This document shows, in pieces, positions 20,836-63,700 of a DNA stretch of 64,000 nt. Below the pieces are notes generated by a model, which was not told where the DNA came from, made no database searches, and was given only the letters and a program-made list of their open reading frames with translations. The translations under genes were made by a program, and so were the position numbers. The DNA is from Bugula neritina (taxonomy: Eukaryota; Animalia; Bryozoa). Position 1 is the stretch's first letter; each line of letters starts with the position of its first letter. Location: assembly GCA_964035545.1 (NCBI GenBank), contig OZ037772.1, forward strand, positions 9,851,150 through 9,915,149, written 5' to 3'.

Positions 20836-23800
20836 ATGGATAATACTGGAGTCAATTGTGAGAGAGCGTGCAGAATATGCTCTACTCAAATAATAGCTGC
20901 CTTTGTACAGGAATGGTTTGTAAAATAATTTATTTACTATAATATTGTAACCCAAATTAATTCAATTAAAATGTTGATGTCTGGAAATTCCAGAACTTAA
21001 TAATTTTTCTACAAGTAGTTTTACTCGTTGAAACGAATTTTTTTTATATGATTTGAATCAACTGAAGTACTTACAACAGGCAATGTAACAACAATATATT
21101 ATAATATAATATAATATAATATAATATAATATAATATAATATAATATAATATTATATAATATAATATAACATAATAGAATATAATATAATATAAAATAAT
21201 ATAATAAATTATAATATAATATAATATAATATAATATAGTATAATATAATATAATATAATATAATATAATGTATTATAATATGATAACGCAAAATATAAT
21301 GCATTACCTATACCTATAGAAAGAATCTTAGTTATAAACAACGTAGGCCTATATATTATAATAACTATAATATATATGCATGATATCGTCTAAAATGATA
21401 TATGATGTAACATAAAATAAAGTAATATATTAAATGTAATTATATTACAGTATGTAGTAACTTCATATAAACAGCAAATTTATAATGTGCTGCTTAAAAA
21501 ATGTACATGTGCAACTTTAATTTATTGGGTTTCATTTAATGGGATTTTTTATCCTGTTTAGGCAACAAGAGAAATTTTTTTTAAAGTTTAGTCAAAAATG
21601 AATGAAGGAAGAATCCAGGAGAAAATTGTAGATATCATGCTCTAAAATTCTCTCTAGTTAAAACACCATAATAAAATAATAAACTTGCAATTAACGTATT
21701 GGCAAATAATCTATTAGTTTACAGTTACTGGACGCATATATGTCTCTATTGTAGCCTCAGTATATCGCAAGGAGAGTATGTCCAGATTGAGGGAGTAGAA
21801 ATTGATCAAAATGTTTCTAGCCTTCAGTTAATCAAATATATGAGAAATGCTAGTAAGTAAATATTCAATAAGCAAATTATTTTACAAACTATTAAAAGTT
21901 ACTATAAAAAAGATACACAATTACCAGATCTGTTTTTAATAATTAATAATTAATAATTATTTGATAAGTTCATATATGAACTTTGATGCAAAAGCATGAA
22001 CAAGCTTTAAAAAACATGCATCGATCATAATATTATGATACTTAAATTGCAAATGAAAATATCATTCAACTGAATTTTGAATTGAATTCCAGCATCAATT
22101 ATTTTTTAATTTTAATATTAAGCAAAACTAAAATTAAAGTGCTTATTAGTTTATACTATTTTTCCGGTCAACAATATTACGATTTTGTCAACTTTGCATC
22201 TTCCTTCTAGGGTTCAAACTTCTTCTGGATTACCACAACCACATGTTGGTAGAAAAAGTGCGAGAGAACACGTCTTGCTATGAACCAACCAGCGACAACC
22301 TTGTGAGGGCCTATTGGAAGCTGCTTTATGACAACCTGCTTCAAGATAGCGTTATCACTTGGACAAAAATTATGATGGTAAGGAGAAAAAAATTGTAATA
22401 GCCTACTTATTATAAGGTTCTTTTTTAACTATAATTTCAAATAGAGTTGAAATTGAAATGTTTTTTGCGGTAATATTATAGTAAGTAACCAATGCAAGTT
22501 AGAACCCTGCATTATCCTAATAGCCACTTTATGTTCTGGATCTTTGTGGCAACGCCATTTTATTTTATAGATCAAAAGTTGTGTTATCAAGCATATATCT
22601 GCCAAACAAATATTGCACTTTGCTTTTGAAACTTTTGAGGTTTTCAAACTAAAATTTCCTCTGCATAAACTTCCAATCAAAATTATTATTAGAATTTAGA
22701 CTTTTTGCATTAAGCTGTTAAATGAGGCTTGCGCACATGCTTATAGCCATCAGAGTGTTTGTCAATTGTCTATAGATTTGTTGTACACTTTTTCATTTTT
22801 ATCTCTTCTTGTTTCTGTCCTACTTCATTGCACTAGCTTTTTATATCTGCATATCTTTAAATTGTTTTTGGGTAAACATTTATGTCTTGCTAATATATTT
22901 CCAATGGCTACAAGCCAAGTTTTCTAGCAGCCGATTTAAAACAACTAAATATATTTAGGCTATATATATATGTATTTAAAGCATTAATTGAGCTTTAACT
23001 CTCAAATATATTCCTGCAATCAATGCAAAGTCTTAACTACATAATATATACACTTTCTTAGTTCAATGCCATGGCTTAAAAATGTATCTATTATTTACTT
23101 TGAAAGATTCTAGCCATAGCCTGTGGTCTTGCTGAAACAGCCTCATGTGCCAGACGTAACAAACGAGTGGCGGAAGTTATAAACTGGACAGCTGAGTCTT
23201 TCAAACTTATGAATATCGACAAATGGATTGAGTCTATGGGTGGTTGGGTAAGCTTCTGATAATTTATTGTTTACTAACTTGTAGTGTATTTGGTGTTTAT
23301 ACGTTGATGTATGAGTAGACTATATATACAATCGAGTTTTGCAAATAAAGTTGTTAGTTTTGTAGTTGGTTAGCATGGAAGAAGTCGCCGTCAATGCTTG
23401 ATTGCAGCAAAAATTGCTGATTGATTGATATAACAGCTTGAATAACATAGTAATGTGCTCAATTGCCTAAAAAGTTTGTCATAGCGTTCACCAAAAATGA
23501 AGAAAAAACAGATAAATGAATATTTATGCTCGAAGCTGTTTTATAGCATTAAGCTTTGCATAATAAAATATATTGATTGCGAAGTATTGCCAATGTACAT
23601 ACTTTGACTTGAACAACTAAAATTGCTCAAAAAAAACTGGAACCGTACAGTGGAATGATTCTAACTAGAGCTTTTTAGCAATCAAATTATTGCTTGTTCA
23701 AATTTTAGCTATATGAGAAACTCTTATTGAAAGAAGCAGTAGATAAGATATTTGTTGACTATAAATGGTTTATTATTATAATAAAAATATTATTAATTAT

Positions 23801-24243
23801 TTTCAATAAATAATTTTATTATATATATACAAGTTTTGTTTTATTATTTGTTACAGATGGAACTCCCCAATCAAATAGAACAATTTCCTCTACCTACACC
23901 TTTCCCAATACACCGGAGAAAAGCATTAATTAGTGAAACATCAAATGGCTGCACAGGAAGTTCTGTTGCAGAAAAAACAAAAGTCTGTGGAGATTCTGGC
24001 ATAAACCAACAACCACCACCATATTCTAGACAGCTACAGCAGGAACCTTCCACGGCAATACATGGTAGATGTGTGGCAAACAATCGAGATTTGAGAGCTG
24101 ACAAGAAACAGACAAATAACTTGGAAAACTCAAATTGTTATGGAGGATGGTTAGATGGAGGAGATTCCTTTGGCAGAAAGTTAATGGATGCTTCAGTCAC
24201 TGATTGGGAAAAAGAATATTTCGATTTAGTTCGAATAGAATAA
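20836..24243 (+). CDS. Divergent Bcl-2-family protein 1 (~290 aa; 128-aa hydrophilic tail, no TM)
   Basis: Exons 20836-20915, 21755-21852, 22211-22377, 23107-23247, 23857-24243 (phases 2,1,0,0). BH4-like STQIIAAFVQE, BH1-like LLQDSVITWTKIMM, BH2 DKWIESMGGW followed by an intron. Exon 1 is the least certain. Confidence 0.8.
21096..21272. repeat. (ATATA)n pentanucleotide microsatellite
   Basis: Visible tandem ATAAT units. Confidence 0.9.
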
Positions 24244-60754: not shown

Positions 60755-63700
60755 ATGGCTCTGGATAGCTCAACAAGGGTCGTCCTTCAAAGGTTCATGT
60801 TGGATCGGTAAGTTTTTGCGCATTTTTTCTTAATTTGATTCTAAAAACAAAAGCAATAATGCACACCAAACCGTAAAGATATTTCATATGTATCTATCAC
60901 ACATGTATGTGGGGGCAGCCGTGGTCTAGGGGTTAGAGCGTTTGCCTAGTAAACACGAGGTCATGAATTTAAACCCCAACAAAGGCCATTGGTAATGTTA
61001 GAAAAAGCATGCTGTCATACTTGCTTCTGTGCCTCATTTGAATAAATCCTTAGCTCAATTTAACAAACACTCCTTCCATCAGGGGTTTTCTCACAGGAAT
61101 GGTGACTATAAACTTGGGTGACTTTTTGTCGTGTGTATCACATATGTATGTAAAAACTATTTCATTAAAGCAAATAAGTTATTAGTTTGTTCCTGTTAAA
61201 AGTGTAATGATGTTTTACTTTGCATTACTTTACCACTTTTACAGGCTCGAGGCAGAGGGATGTGATTCTAGTCAAATAGAGGATATACATTTGTTTATTG
61301 GTGAATTAATAGAAAGTCCTGAAGTGATTAGAGGAGTGAACTTGTTACATGATGCACGTGAGTGTATACTTGAAATATTCTAGTATAAGTTTAGTGTTGC
61401 CTCTACCCAGTGGCCCTGATGGGGAAATAGTTAATATGCCTGCTTGTACGCCGAAAGTCTCTGGTTCGAGTCCCAGTGGAGGCCAAAGTTTTATAATAAG
61501 TTTAATAATTATTGCATTAACATTTTAATTACCAGAAACTTTGATCTATTAAATAAGTAAGCAGATATTAATGCTGCTAAATAGTAAATAGTTAAAAAAT
61601 GGGAAGTATGATAGTTTTATAAACAATTATTGTTACAATTCAATAAAGTCATGGTGTCAAGCAAGAATTTAATGCGCAGTAAAACAATTAGGATGTGACA
61701 GAATTTAACTTCACCAGCTTTGTAAGGTGATGTGGATTACTAGAATACTTTGAATTATCCTGTTGAATAAAACAACCTATGTCTTGCATTGGGTTAAAAA
61801 CTTCTTGCTATTGAAACAAAACTGGGGGTTAAACTATAAATAAATTAGCTGCTTTTGCTTGATTAAAGTATGTTATTTCAAAACTAAACTGCATTTTGTG
61901 AAAACTCAAATTGCTAAAAAATACTTTTTGATAACATCTGCACAAATTCGAACAAGTTTTAGTATTTGTTTGATATATCAACATGGTATATCAACATGCA
62001 TCCATCAATTAATCAAAAAACAAGAAATGCCAATCATTATTTGATATAGTGATCTGTTCTGTTATTTTGTGTTAATTTTTTATGATCTGCATTGTAGGGG
62101 AACAGGCATTTGAAATTGAAGAATACAGGAAGTACATAACTGAATCTGCCGCCATTGTTTCAGAAGATCCAGAAGACCGCGAAGTGGTCATAGCAATAGA
62201 AGAAATAGCTGCTAAGCTATTTAAGAAGGGCAAATGTTCATGGAGAAGAATTTGCTTGGTAACTGAAATGACTTTTTAAAGAGTTGCCCAAATATTGTAA
62301 CAATAAAAATCCATACTTGATTAGAAGCTTTATTTGTTTAGGAATTTCACTGCTTAGAAGACAATTCCTAATAAGACCATATATAAACTATGTTCTTTAA
62401 AATGCTTGCAACACGATATGGGCATTGTGCCCTCCCTCCTCTTCCTTATAAAATGCTGGTAAGATAGTTTAGGAACTTTCTTAGTGGCTTCAGGGCAATT
62501 GTGACTAATTAGTTTTAATAACATCAATGACACTCGGGTGTTTGATGCTATGCGTAGTTGTCATAACATAAGCAATATATGATATTTGATGCACGTGTTG
62601 TATGAAACATATTTAATATATTTTTAGTACATAGTAATTGCTGTGGAGATGATAGTTAACCTAAGTGGGGACGCAAATCGGGAGCACTGGATTACCATAT
62701 TGGACAGAGTTCTGCTCCGGCTAGAGCTGGATCCTTGTAGAAAGTTTCTTGAAAAGAAAGGAGGCTGGGTTAGTTATAGCTTTTCCTTCTAGAATAGTCT
62801 ATTAAATTAATCTTGTAATAATTTATTGATGTTAAACTATGGTGAATCATGAAAATTATGATACATGGGGAGTAATGTAACATAAAATTTAATTGAGAAT
62901 ATTAATAGGTAGGTTTAATCTATGTCAAATAACAGCAGTAAATACAATCAGAATAATATGGCTGCGCCAGAAGACATTTAGGCTCGGTTGAAGTCTTTAT
63001 TTGACTTAAAAGATGTGTATGTAGCAGCAATAGTATTGGTAATAAATGATCGTGGTGCGTTCTTTTTCAAGAATAAATCCTTTTAGCCTTAGAGCAGCAG
63101 TAATTTCTGTTGATCGTGTTCAATTAGGATCTAAGTATAGGGAGTACTAGTTGCTTGTGTTGTGACTATTCGAAATGATAGTAGCATATTTATTGCTATA
63201 ATAAAAAAAGGTTTGCATGCTAAAACATTGTCTGTTTCAAGTTGATAACTGTGGCTAAATGTATGTAGTAGTATGAGTAGCAATAAGCTGTAGAAATGCT
63301 GTTTAATGCTTGTTATAGTAGTCAGTAATAGTGTTGGTAGCTTGTGGTAGTTTCAGTGAGTGAGAGAATACTCAGTGACAGTTATAAGTAACGTTCAGTC
63401 AATGGCAGTAGTAGCTAAAATCTACTGCAAGTAGGAGAAATGCTGAAAAATTTAATTGATTTTAGCCGGGCATGCAAAATTATTGTGTAGGCTATTACTT
63501 TATGTTTTGAAATAGAAAAAAAAATTTCGAGTTTATATAAATAGCACAAACCAAAAATACAGATTTGTATTTAACCTTTTGTTTTTGTGTTGCCATAGCA
63601 ACTATAGAAGTACAAAAAGTCTTTTTTATTGCAAAATTATATCTATTGTATGCGTACAACTGATGATTGTGACATATTGAATACAGGAAAAAGCACCACT

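Follow-up and report, generated by a model that had tools for sequence, protein, structure and literature searches.

The window analyzed here, a stretch of 64,000 nucleotides (contig OZ037772.1 of assembly GCA_964035545.1, positions 9,851,150 to 9,915,149 of the forward strand), carries nine tandem Bcl-2-like genes on its plus strand, eight of them intact and one broken. Taken as a whole, this array, from a bugulid bryozoan, is best explained as an old, highly diverged lineage within the cellular Bcl-2 family, with eight intact genes and one pseudogene, an explanation that we hold with somewhat more confidence than doubt. The sequences point to a previously undescribed subfamily that probably lacks the textbook mode of action. 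The DNA of the window is AT-rich (approximately 23 to 41% G+C in 2-kb windows) and rich in microsatellites, with few long reading frames, and the Bcl-2 core of each gene, approximately 160 codons, is spread over four small exons. All comparisons between two species are between the window, taken from its sequence to be a related, non-identical bugulid, and contigs of Bugula neritina, of which the GenBank contig VXIV02003332.1 (L001) is collinear with the window from 35.8 to 56 kb at 75 to 85% nucleotide identity.

A base-by-base reading of gene 5 against B. neritina yielded a five-exon model to which the other genes were then fitted; frames were checked by summing the exon lengths, exon by exon, and in all eight intact genes they add up to whole codons. 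Exon A comprises the ATG, a variable stretch, and a helix resembling α1/BH4 (BH, Bcl-2 homology), and exon B contains the remainder of α1, a loop, and a helix in the BH3 position. Exon C, with BH1, is 158 to 167 nt long and ends five codons after the BH1 Trp; exon D, with BH2, is 129 to 141 nt long and ends at the BH2 Trp; and exon E has an in-frame acceptor at the start of a long open frame that runs to the stop. The intron phases at the ends of exons A, B, C, and D are 2, 1, 0, and 0, respectively. The nine genes, with their predicted sizes, are as follows.

20836–24243, plus strand: gene 1 (290 codons); exons A 20836–20915 and B 21755–21852 (both tentative), C 22211–22377, D 23107–23247, E 23857–24243 including the stop; BH1 core TWTK at 22357–22368, with Thr at the Gly position and Lys at the Arg position.
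24746–28221, plus strand: gene 2 (318 codons); exons A 24746–24867, B 25268–25368, C 26404–26570, D 27200–27328, E 27784–28221; BH1 core NWEI at 26550–26561, with Glu at the Gly position and no basic residue.
29337–33526, plus strand: gene 3 (844 codons); exons A 29337–29617 (with a long N-terminal extension), B 29980–30080, C 30506–30672, D 30942–31070, E 31670–33526; BH1 core EWSS at 30652–30663, with Ser at the Gly position.
35135–38358, plus strand: gene 4 (341 codons); exons A 35135–35181, B 35526–35632, C 36209–36366, D 37167–37307, E 37786–38358; BH1 core TWNR at 36346–36357, with Asn at the Gly position and the Arg kept.
39536–43586, plus strand: gene 5 (517 codons); exons A 39536–39606, B 40276–40382, C 41013–41170, D 41822–41962, E 42510–43586; BH1 core SWTR at 41150–41161.
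44424–49226, plus strand: gene 6 (594 codons); exons A 44424–44521, B 45109–45221, C 45621–45781, D 47040–47180, E 47955–49226; BH1 core TWTK at 45761–45772.
49905–54517, plus strand: gene 7 (broken); relic of exon A (ATG at 49905, in-frame stop at 49938–49940), relic of exon B at approximately 50604–50715 running into a microsatellite, exon C remnant 51400–51504 with a frameshift, D 52513–52653, E 53468–54517 still open; BH1 remnant TWTK at 51484–51495.
56045–59014, plus strand: gene 8 (208 codons); exons A 56045–56097, B 56729–56841, C 57379–57542, D 58156–58296, short last exon 58859–59014; BH1 core KWTY at 57522–57533, conserved in B. neritina.
60755–62768, plus strand: gene 9 (at least 156 codons, to the BH2 Trp); exons A 60755–60807, B 61245–61357, C 62098–62258, D 62628–62768; BH1 core SWRR at 62238–62249, with Arg at the Gly position.

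Gene 9 is the most divergent member of the array (9 to 19% identity in exon D), and its last exon is represented by a candidate only, an open frame at 63747–63923 that includes a hydrophobic 19-mer (mean Kyte-Doolittle hydropathy [KD] of 1.65). Two other assignments were considered and rejected. Small conserved exons such as 24734–24868 and 39503–39607 were not accepted as C-terminal tail exons; because they have an ATG start, a phase-2 donor, and an α1/BH4-like helix, they are read as the first exons of the next genes. The ATG at 57372 was discarded as the start of gene 8, as it is not conserved in B. neritina, and the exon begins at the conserved acceptor at 57379.

A six-frame scan recovered, each at its place on the plus strand, all the BH1 strings that a first-pass annotation of this DNA had listed for genes 1 to 6, 8, and 9, together with a ninth, TWTK of gene 7, that it had passed over. 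The interval under which they had been listed, 22211–62258, starts at the acceptor of the BH1 exon of gene 1 and ends with the last base of the BH1 exon of gene 9. As that annotation had noted, the Trp is invariant and the Gly is never present, which is true of nine genes out of nine, gene 7 included. The motifs do not differ from gene to gene as it had claimed: there are seven distinct strings in the nine genes, and TWTK occurs three times (genes 1, 6, and 7). The residues at the Gly position in genes 1 to 9 are T, E, S, N, T, T, T, T, and R, with Thr in the majority (5 of 9) and Ser or Thr in 6 of 9, and a basic residue is retained at the Arg position, two after the Trp, in 6 of 9. A profile of the nine exons, with the consensus kdGeitWtrIl, aligns to EDGIINWGRIV of Bfl-1/A1 with an E value of 0.004; because the Trp of the profile aligns on the NWGR Trp of Bfl-1/A1, the residue that follows it is taken to occupy the position of the NWGR glycine. 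The GT donor lies exactly five codons past the BH1 Trp in every one of the nine genes. The nine Gly-less cases are not independent of each other, since the pattern reflects shared ancestry and not chance. The earlier statement that all paralogs have lost the Gly stands as far as its absence from all nine genes is concerned but is better read as a single ancestral loss, related contigs having WSR and WHG. Most likely, the Gly was lost once, in the ancestral subfamily, rather than gene by gene, because contigs of other marine eukaryotes share the exon structure and also lack the Gly. Loss of the BH1 Gly was previously known in single genes (PMC8998228); here, it extends to a whole cluster.

The BH2 motif reads GGW in seven genes, QGW in gene 5, and CGW in gene 4, and the BH1 Trp is followed by the BH2 G-W in the order and spacing of the family. 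In all nine genes, the exon ends directly after the BH2 Trp, with the TGG codon followed by GT; an exon boundary right after this Trp is a hallmark of the Bcl-2 family (PMC8998228). Matches to the Bcl-2 domain (Pfam ID PF00452) were obtained with seven of the nine BH2 exons and with two BH1 exons, at E values from 1e-5 to 0.07 (2e-4 for exon D of gene 1), and the exons map collinearly on this domain, exon C on positions 25–54 and exon D on positions 55–100. The NCBI model P0003, the B. neritina ortholog of gene 6 that joins exons C and D, scores 21.1 bits on PF00452, across the junction. Searches of PDB with the exon D profile gave BAX as the best match (E = 1.3e-5), then a Bak protein, Hydra Bcl-2-like 4, and Bcl-2; the profile aligns to α5–α7 of BAX/Bak, including BH2. 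No Bcl-2 match was found in PDB with the exon B profile, and a phmmer search of PDB with residues 1 to 91 of P0003 (P0003:1-91) retrieved designed helical repeats only. An AlphaFold model of P0003:1-91, which covers only the BH1 and BH2 part, has five helices, with a mean predicted local distance difference test score (pLDDT) of 71.7. The nearest PDB structures to this half-domain in a Foldseek search were mostly Bcl-xL, Bak (query-normalized TM-score [TMq] of 0.67), Mcl-1, and sponge BHP2. A combined profile of exon C and exon D fragments was misaligned by MAFFT and left unused for searching, and alignment A3 served only for the partial structure model. The first-pass claim that the fold is retained is supported by the Pfam matches of the exons, the match of the exon D profile to BAX, the boundary at GGW, the partial model, and the purifying selection described below. 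Judging from these sequence features, membership in the Bcl-2 family appears well supported.

No clear L-x-x-x-G-D BH3 had been seen in the first pass, and none is present, although a helix in the BH3 position does exist at the exon B/C junction. It has BH3-like hydrophobic spacing and is split by a phase-1 intron in genes 1 to 6, 8, and 9, as well as in a related gene on the environmental contig L004. The codon that the intron divides follows the third hydrophobic position; in genes 2 to 6, it specifies Glu or Asp instead of the usual Gly, and only genes 6 and 9 keep the Asp that comes next. The apparent “G-E” or “G-D” at the end of exon B was rejected as donor read-through, the spliced codon being Glu or Asp. 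In Bcl-2 proteins, the BH1 Gly and the BH3 Gly-Asp let the BH3 helix pack closely into the groove. Because the BH1 Gly and the BH3 Gly are both replaced, the classical contact between BH3 and groove would have lost its small residue on either side. The BH1, BH2, and BH3 motifs have been stable through metazoan history, with no alternative BH3 site observed (PMC8998228).

Purifying selection acts on the core exons of genes 3 to 6 and 8 and, more weakly, on the tails. The ratio of nonsynonymous to synonymous substitution rates (dN/dS) was obtained by the Nei-Gojobori method for orthologous exons of the window and B. neritina, exon by exon, with only the counts pooled; this comparison covers genes 3 to 8, and genes 1, 2, and 9 are represented by intact frames only. 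The cores of genes 3 to 6 and 8 show dN/dS of 0.03 to 0.3 at dS of 0.2 to 0.5, with frames and splice sites intact in both species, and the tails of genes 3 to 6 show dN/dS of 0.28 to 0.33. Pooled, the core exons of genes 4 to 6 give a dN/dS of 0.12 at a dS of 0.42. Gene 3, compared with its ortholog on L009, has dN/dS of 0.14 in exon C, 0.06 in exon D, and 0.33 in exon E and keeps EWSS; gene 4, compared with its ortholog on L001, has 94% protein identity in exon C and 100% in exon D, with dN/dS of 0.07 (C), 0 (D), and 0.33 (E). The corresponding values for gene 5 are 0.06 (A), 0 (B), 0.11 (C), 0.03 (D), and 0.28 (E), and those for the gene 6 core are 0.05 to 0.34. Gene 8 and its ortholog on L015 share 100% (A), 95% (B), 94% (C), and 96% (D) protein identity, with a core dN/dS of 0.07. 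Identity between paralogs, the pair of genes 6 and 7 excepted, is only 9 to 34% in exon D and 5 to 34% in exon C. Because identity between paralogs is low and the orthologous exons are under purifying selection, the array is old, with each member individually kept. The BH1 variants EWSS, TWNR, SWTR, TWTK, and KWTY recur unchanged in B. neritina. The first-pass proposal of a diversified binding surface fits the paralog identity of 5 to 34%, whereas the motif of each compared gene is fixed between the two species; this fixation marks an old divergence rather than an ongoing diversification.

Conservation also extends to some noncoding stretches at the gene starts. Approximately 115 bases before the gene 5 ATG (39420–39535) are 100% identical to B. 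neritina, in surroundings of approximately 75 to 77% noncoding identity, and may represent a 5′ untranslated region or a promoter element. The region before the start of gene 6 (44253–44423) is more than 90% conserved.

Exon E of genes 1 to 7 encodes 128 to 618 residues, of which 61 to 73% are polar or disorder promoting, and a Pfam scan of the tail exons found no domain in any tail. There is no hydrophobic anchor in the tails of genes 3 to 7, where the maximum KD over 19 residues does not exceed 0.66, and the tails of genes 1 and 2, read to their stops, contain no membrane anchor either. A further exon with an anchor is unlikely, because the gene 5 products of the window and B. neritina stay conserved, with mostly synonymous differences, up to the last residue before a double stop and because the B. 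neritina gene models stop at the same stops for genes 4 to 6. The tail exon of gene 3 has 618 codons and a Ser/Pro content of 37%; it contains an internal duplication of approximately 49 codons (32426–32572 and 32720–32866), seen both in cross-matches with L009 and in translation, and a 21-nt repeat at 32568–32637. Coding tandem repeats of 21 or 39 nt are found in the tails of genes 3, 6 (21/39 nt), and 7. In the tail of gene 5, well-conserved blocks form a mosaic, among them an acidic G-D-W-V-D/N-L that resembles an LC3-interacting region (LIR) and is present in both species, and a basic cluster. Acidic F/Y-x-x-L motifs are found at the C termini of genes 1 and 2 (F-x-x-L in gene 2). These short motifs are only leads to a possible function. 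Gene 8 has no long tail: its 51-codon last exon has a weakly hydrophobic end, which, like the candidate last exon of gene 9, is borderline (KD of 1.65 to 1.71).

Gene 7 is, by its sequence, an old chimeric pseudogene. The segment 45440–50707 is duplicated at 51171–56832, and this duplication produced the chimera, in which exons A and B are of the gene 8 type and exons C to E are of the gene 6 type. The frameshift in exon C is common to the window and B. neritina, the copy of exon A has an in-frame stop, a counterpart of exon D was not detected in B. neritina, and the dN/dS of exon E is 0.63. The spacer between genes 6 and 7 (49428–50597) contains many 45-nt windows of more than 90% identity with B. 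neritina, even though it holds only the broken gene 8-type exons A and B. Gene conversion with the functional copy at 55858–56832, or another functional element, might be responsible.

A large representative search with the exon D profile yielded 27 proteins at E values up to 0.001, none of which is a full-length spliced relative. They include P0003, a Bcl-xL-like fragment of 190 residues, and a handful of long repetitive proteins; all others are unspliced exon-length frames that end in G-G-W-V and sit on environmental (metagenome or Logan) contigs. Contig L004 (ENA accession number ERZ4903326, 41% G+C) carries a gene with the same five exons in the same phases and a polar tail exon; its α1 and BH3 region are closest to those of gene 5, its BH1 reads DWSR, and it is likely the ortholog of gene 5. 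The first two exons of a second family gene immediately downstream of it (L004, 4884–5457) indicate that the tandem arrangement is not peculiar to Bugula. Contigs L007/L008 (JGI) have the same intron in α5 and DWHG. As L004/L005 and L007/L008 share introns with the array and have Ser or His in place of the BH1 Gly, the Gly-less form with the α5 intron predates the Bugula array. At least three different exon D-like frames (P0009, P0018, and P0020, on contigs L006, L013, and L014; 36 to 40% G+C) come from Logan run SRR31840194 and point to another organism with several paralogs; these contigs are too short to include BH1.

Word searches with three tail exons found Bugula-derived fragments only and no full-length spliced protein. 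They retrieved a B. neritina hypothetical protein and two proteins from JGI data sets 3300002729 and 3300003318 (contig prefix AY690838), the DNA of which matches the B. neritina contig. The annotation of L001 breaks these genes into fragments, with calls at 6015–7902, 10001–11710, and 11767–12501. One model begins at exon D; another joins exons C and D, exits BH2 two residues early, and stops within the tail, the remainder of which is called as a separate gene; and no model takes in exons A and B. Literature searches gave nothing concerning Bcl-2 genes of bryozoans.

Upstream of the array is a multiexon gene of the carboxylesterase/cholinesterase type (9700–16650, plus strand; Pfam COesterase, E values of 5.6e-17 and 4.6e-20), and exon-like frames are found on the minus strand at 3300–6800, among which the frame 5376–5660 matches the IRS-type PTB domain (E = 1.2e-11). 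An Rfam scan of the window gave no matches. A dispersed repeat of approximately 200 bp, with copies in both orientations at 74 to 85% identity and several of them in introns of the array, is probably an element resembling a short interspersed nuclear element (SINE) or a miniature inverted-repeat transposable element (MITE). Long microsatellites in the introns and spacers of the array are of the types (GT)152, (TA)n, (AGAG)n, (CACACACT)56, and (TATAT)40; a (TATAT)n run starts a few bases past the exon C donor of gene 8, and the (CACACACT)n run adjoins the relic exon B of gene 7.

3149–3357, 11472–11638, 45838–46004, 46137–46345, 51577–51789, and 60916–61125, both orientations: copies of the dispersed repeat.
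25461–25764, 29758–29959, 45342–45566, 50716–51167, 57548–57750, and 60221–60496: long microsatellites in the introns and spacers of the array.

These features suggest how the array proteins might work. The BH1 Gly and the BH3 Gly-Asp would have been lost once, in the ancestor of the branch, placing the proteins outside the standard exchange of BH3 helices in grooves with partners of the Bax, Bak, or Bcl-2 type; as the first-pass annotation proposed, their partners may be non-canonical. Because the tails have no anchor, the products of genes 1 to 7 would be soluble. Their compact helical domain could act as a conserved interaction module, and the paralog-specific tails may carry short linear motifs that give specific outputs, for example, the LIR-like G-D-W-V-x-L and basic cluster of gene 5 or the acidic aromatic C termini of genes 1 and 2. 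The short hydrophobic ends of gene 8 and perhaps of gene 9 may place them nearer to the ancestral anchored form. Whether the array proteins indeed dispense with the standard BH3-in-groove exchange and act as soluble adaptors with specificity given by the tails is, in our judgment, about evenly balanced.

The closest parallel to such an arrangement is BCL2L13 (Bcl-rambo), in which an N-terminal domain with BH1 to BH4, binding no other Bcl-2 family member, is followed directly after BH2 by a long polar region holding both short repeats in tandem and a W-x-x-[ILV] LC3-interacting motif (PMC9800997, PMC10887287). This Glu/Ser-rich tail, known as BHNo, signals. The likeness is one of architecture only: genes 1 to 7 have the same order, with the core followed directly after BH2 by a polar tail of 128 to 618 residues, coding tandem repeats in genes 3, 6, and 7, and the conserved G-D-W-V-x-L in gene 5. 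In contrast to genes 1 to 7, which lack an anchor, BCL2L13 depends on its transmembrane anchor for localization and activity. BCL2L13 may also lack the BH1 Gly; a text search for its BH1 string found nothing.

Several observations weigh against this interpretation. Every exon scores below the PF00452 curated cutoff of 31.4 bits (the best reaches 26.2 bits), each piece being half a domain, and none of the Foldseek matches is significant, with all E values above 0.4. The exon joins rest on splice signals, phases, conservation between paralogs and orthologs, and two NCBI models. The LIR-like and basic motifs, being short, could occur by chance alone, and genes 6 and 7 have none. Ser or Thr is present at the Gly position in 6 of 9 genes and a basic residue at the Arg position in 6 of 9. 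Numerous viral Bcl-2 proteins bind Bak or Bax even though they have no BH motifs. Finally, loss of the BH1 Gly need not abolish BH3 binding, as Boo/Diva, with Ser in this position, binds some BH3 ligands (PMC8998228).

An extended version of the soluble-adaptor reading, in which every element is combined into one history, is tentative, and we would sooner doubt than assert it. It would have an ancient soluble subfamily, with the α5 intron, the split BH3 exon, loss of the BH1 Gly and the BH3 Gly-Asp, and long, motif-rich tails in place of the anchor, descend from a Bok-like ancestor, expand in tandem in bryozoans, and take a role outside the control of mitochondrial permeabilization, for example, as selective-autophagy or nuclear adaptors, either as the invertebrate counterpart of BCL2L13 or as a convergent parallel to it. 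A Bok-like origin is suggested by the split BH3 exon and by the weak Bax/Bak-type similarity of exon D. The multiexon Bok gene has its BH3 motif spread over two exons, and its last boundary falls at the BH2 GGW (PMC8998228); similarly, genes 1 to 6, 8, and 9 split the BH3-position helix with a phase-1 intron and end BH2 with G-W followed by GT. However, Bok has retained a BH1 with W-G-K/R, a BH3 with L-x-x-x-G-D, and its membrane anchor, whereas the array genes lack the canonical BH1 and BH3 and genes 1 to 7 lack the anchor.

The main rival is that the array encodes ordinary apoptosis regulators, with grooves that bind BH3 with altered selectivity, as in Boo/Diva, and that together form a graded prosurvival or sensitizer set; on balance, we consider this unlikely. 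Mouse Boo/Diva has Ser at the BH1 Gly position, as does gene 3, and shows changed BH3 selectivity with a restricted repertoire, whereas Trichoplax Bcl-2L4 has the BH1 I-S-W-R-R-I-V, without the Gly and with the same W-R-R as gene 9; the grooves of both have been discussed as altered or nonfunctional (PMC8998228). The Ser/Thr residues and the Arg or Lys two after the Trp, each in 6 of 9 genes, fit such a groove, and purifying selection on the core implies that the domain does something specific. Boo and Bcl-2L4 are single genes in which BH3 and the anchor are otherwise conserved; here, the Gly is missing from a nine-gene cluster and its relatives, together with the BH3 Gly-Asp and, mostly, the anchor. 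Against the rival, seven genes have no membrane anchor, the BH3-position helix is without Gly-Asp, bulky or charged residues (Glu, Asn, and Arg) occupy the Gly position in genes 2, 4, and 9, and the paralogs differ at nearly all other positions of the groove region.

Distinctly improbable is a role as groove-less adaptors in innate immune signaling, on the pattern of poxvirus A46, A52, B14, K7, and N1, in which a helical Bcl-2-type fold is not used for canonical BH3 binding. What speaks for it is the general pattern only: a retained fold, lost groove residues, divergent tandem copies as in immune clusters, and motif-bearing tails. No sequence feature points to components of Toll-like receptor (TLR) or NF-κB signaling, the Pfam scan of the tails found no immune-related domain, and the genes, rather than evolving fast, are each conserved between species. 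The viral proteins also lack introns and any recognizable BH1 or BH2, whereas the array genes are cellular and multiexon, keep the Trp and GGW, and match PF00452; the poxvirus analogy drawn in the first pass is weaker than those with the cellular BCL2L13, Boo/Diva, and Trichoplax Bcl-2L4.

We likewise see little room for Bok/Bax-like pro-death effectors that permeabilize membranes and consider them very unlikely. The best solved relatives of the exon D profile are BAX and a Bak protein, and the multiexon gene with BH3 split over two exons has been described for Bok (PMC8998228), but an effector requires an intact BH3 (Leu...Gly-Asp), for BH3-in-groove dimers, and a C-terminal anchor, both missing in genes 1 to 7, and Bok is not among the best 60 of the 147 PDB matches of the profile. 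The view that the genes are mostly decaying duplicates, with the missing Gly a sign of relaxed constraint, fits gene 7 (the shared frameshift, the stop in exon A, exon D absent in B. neritina, and the tail dN/dS) but hardly the array, being refuted for genes 3 to 6 and 8 by their core dN/dS of 0.03 to 0.3, intact frames and splice sites, and conserved BH1 variants; genes 1, 2, and 9 have intact frames.

The array amounts to a natural experiment on other uses of the Bcl-2 fold, in which selection keeps the fold while both glycines and, mostly, the anchor have been dropped. Because the public annotation of B. neritina splits and mis-splices these genes, the Bcl-2 repertoires of bryozoans are probably undercounted. 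If the tails are indeed the working parts, the array may offer eight ready-made variants of how a Bcl-2 core can be coupled to different outputs.

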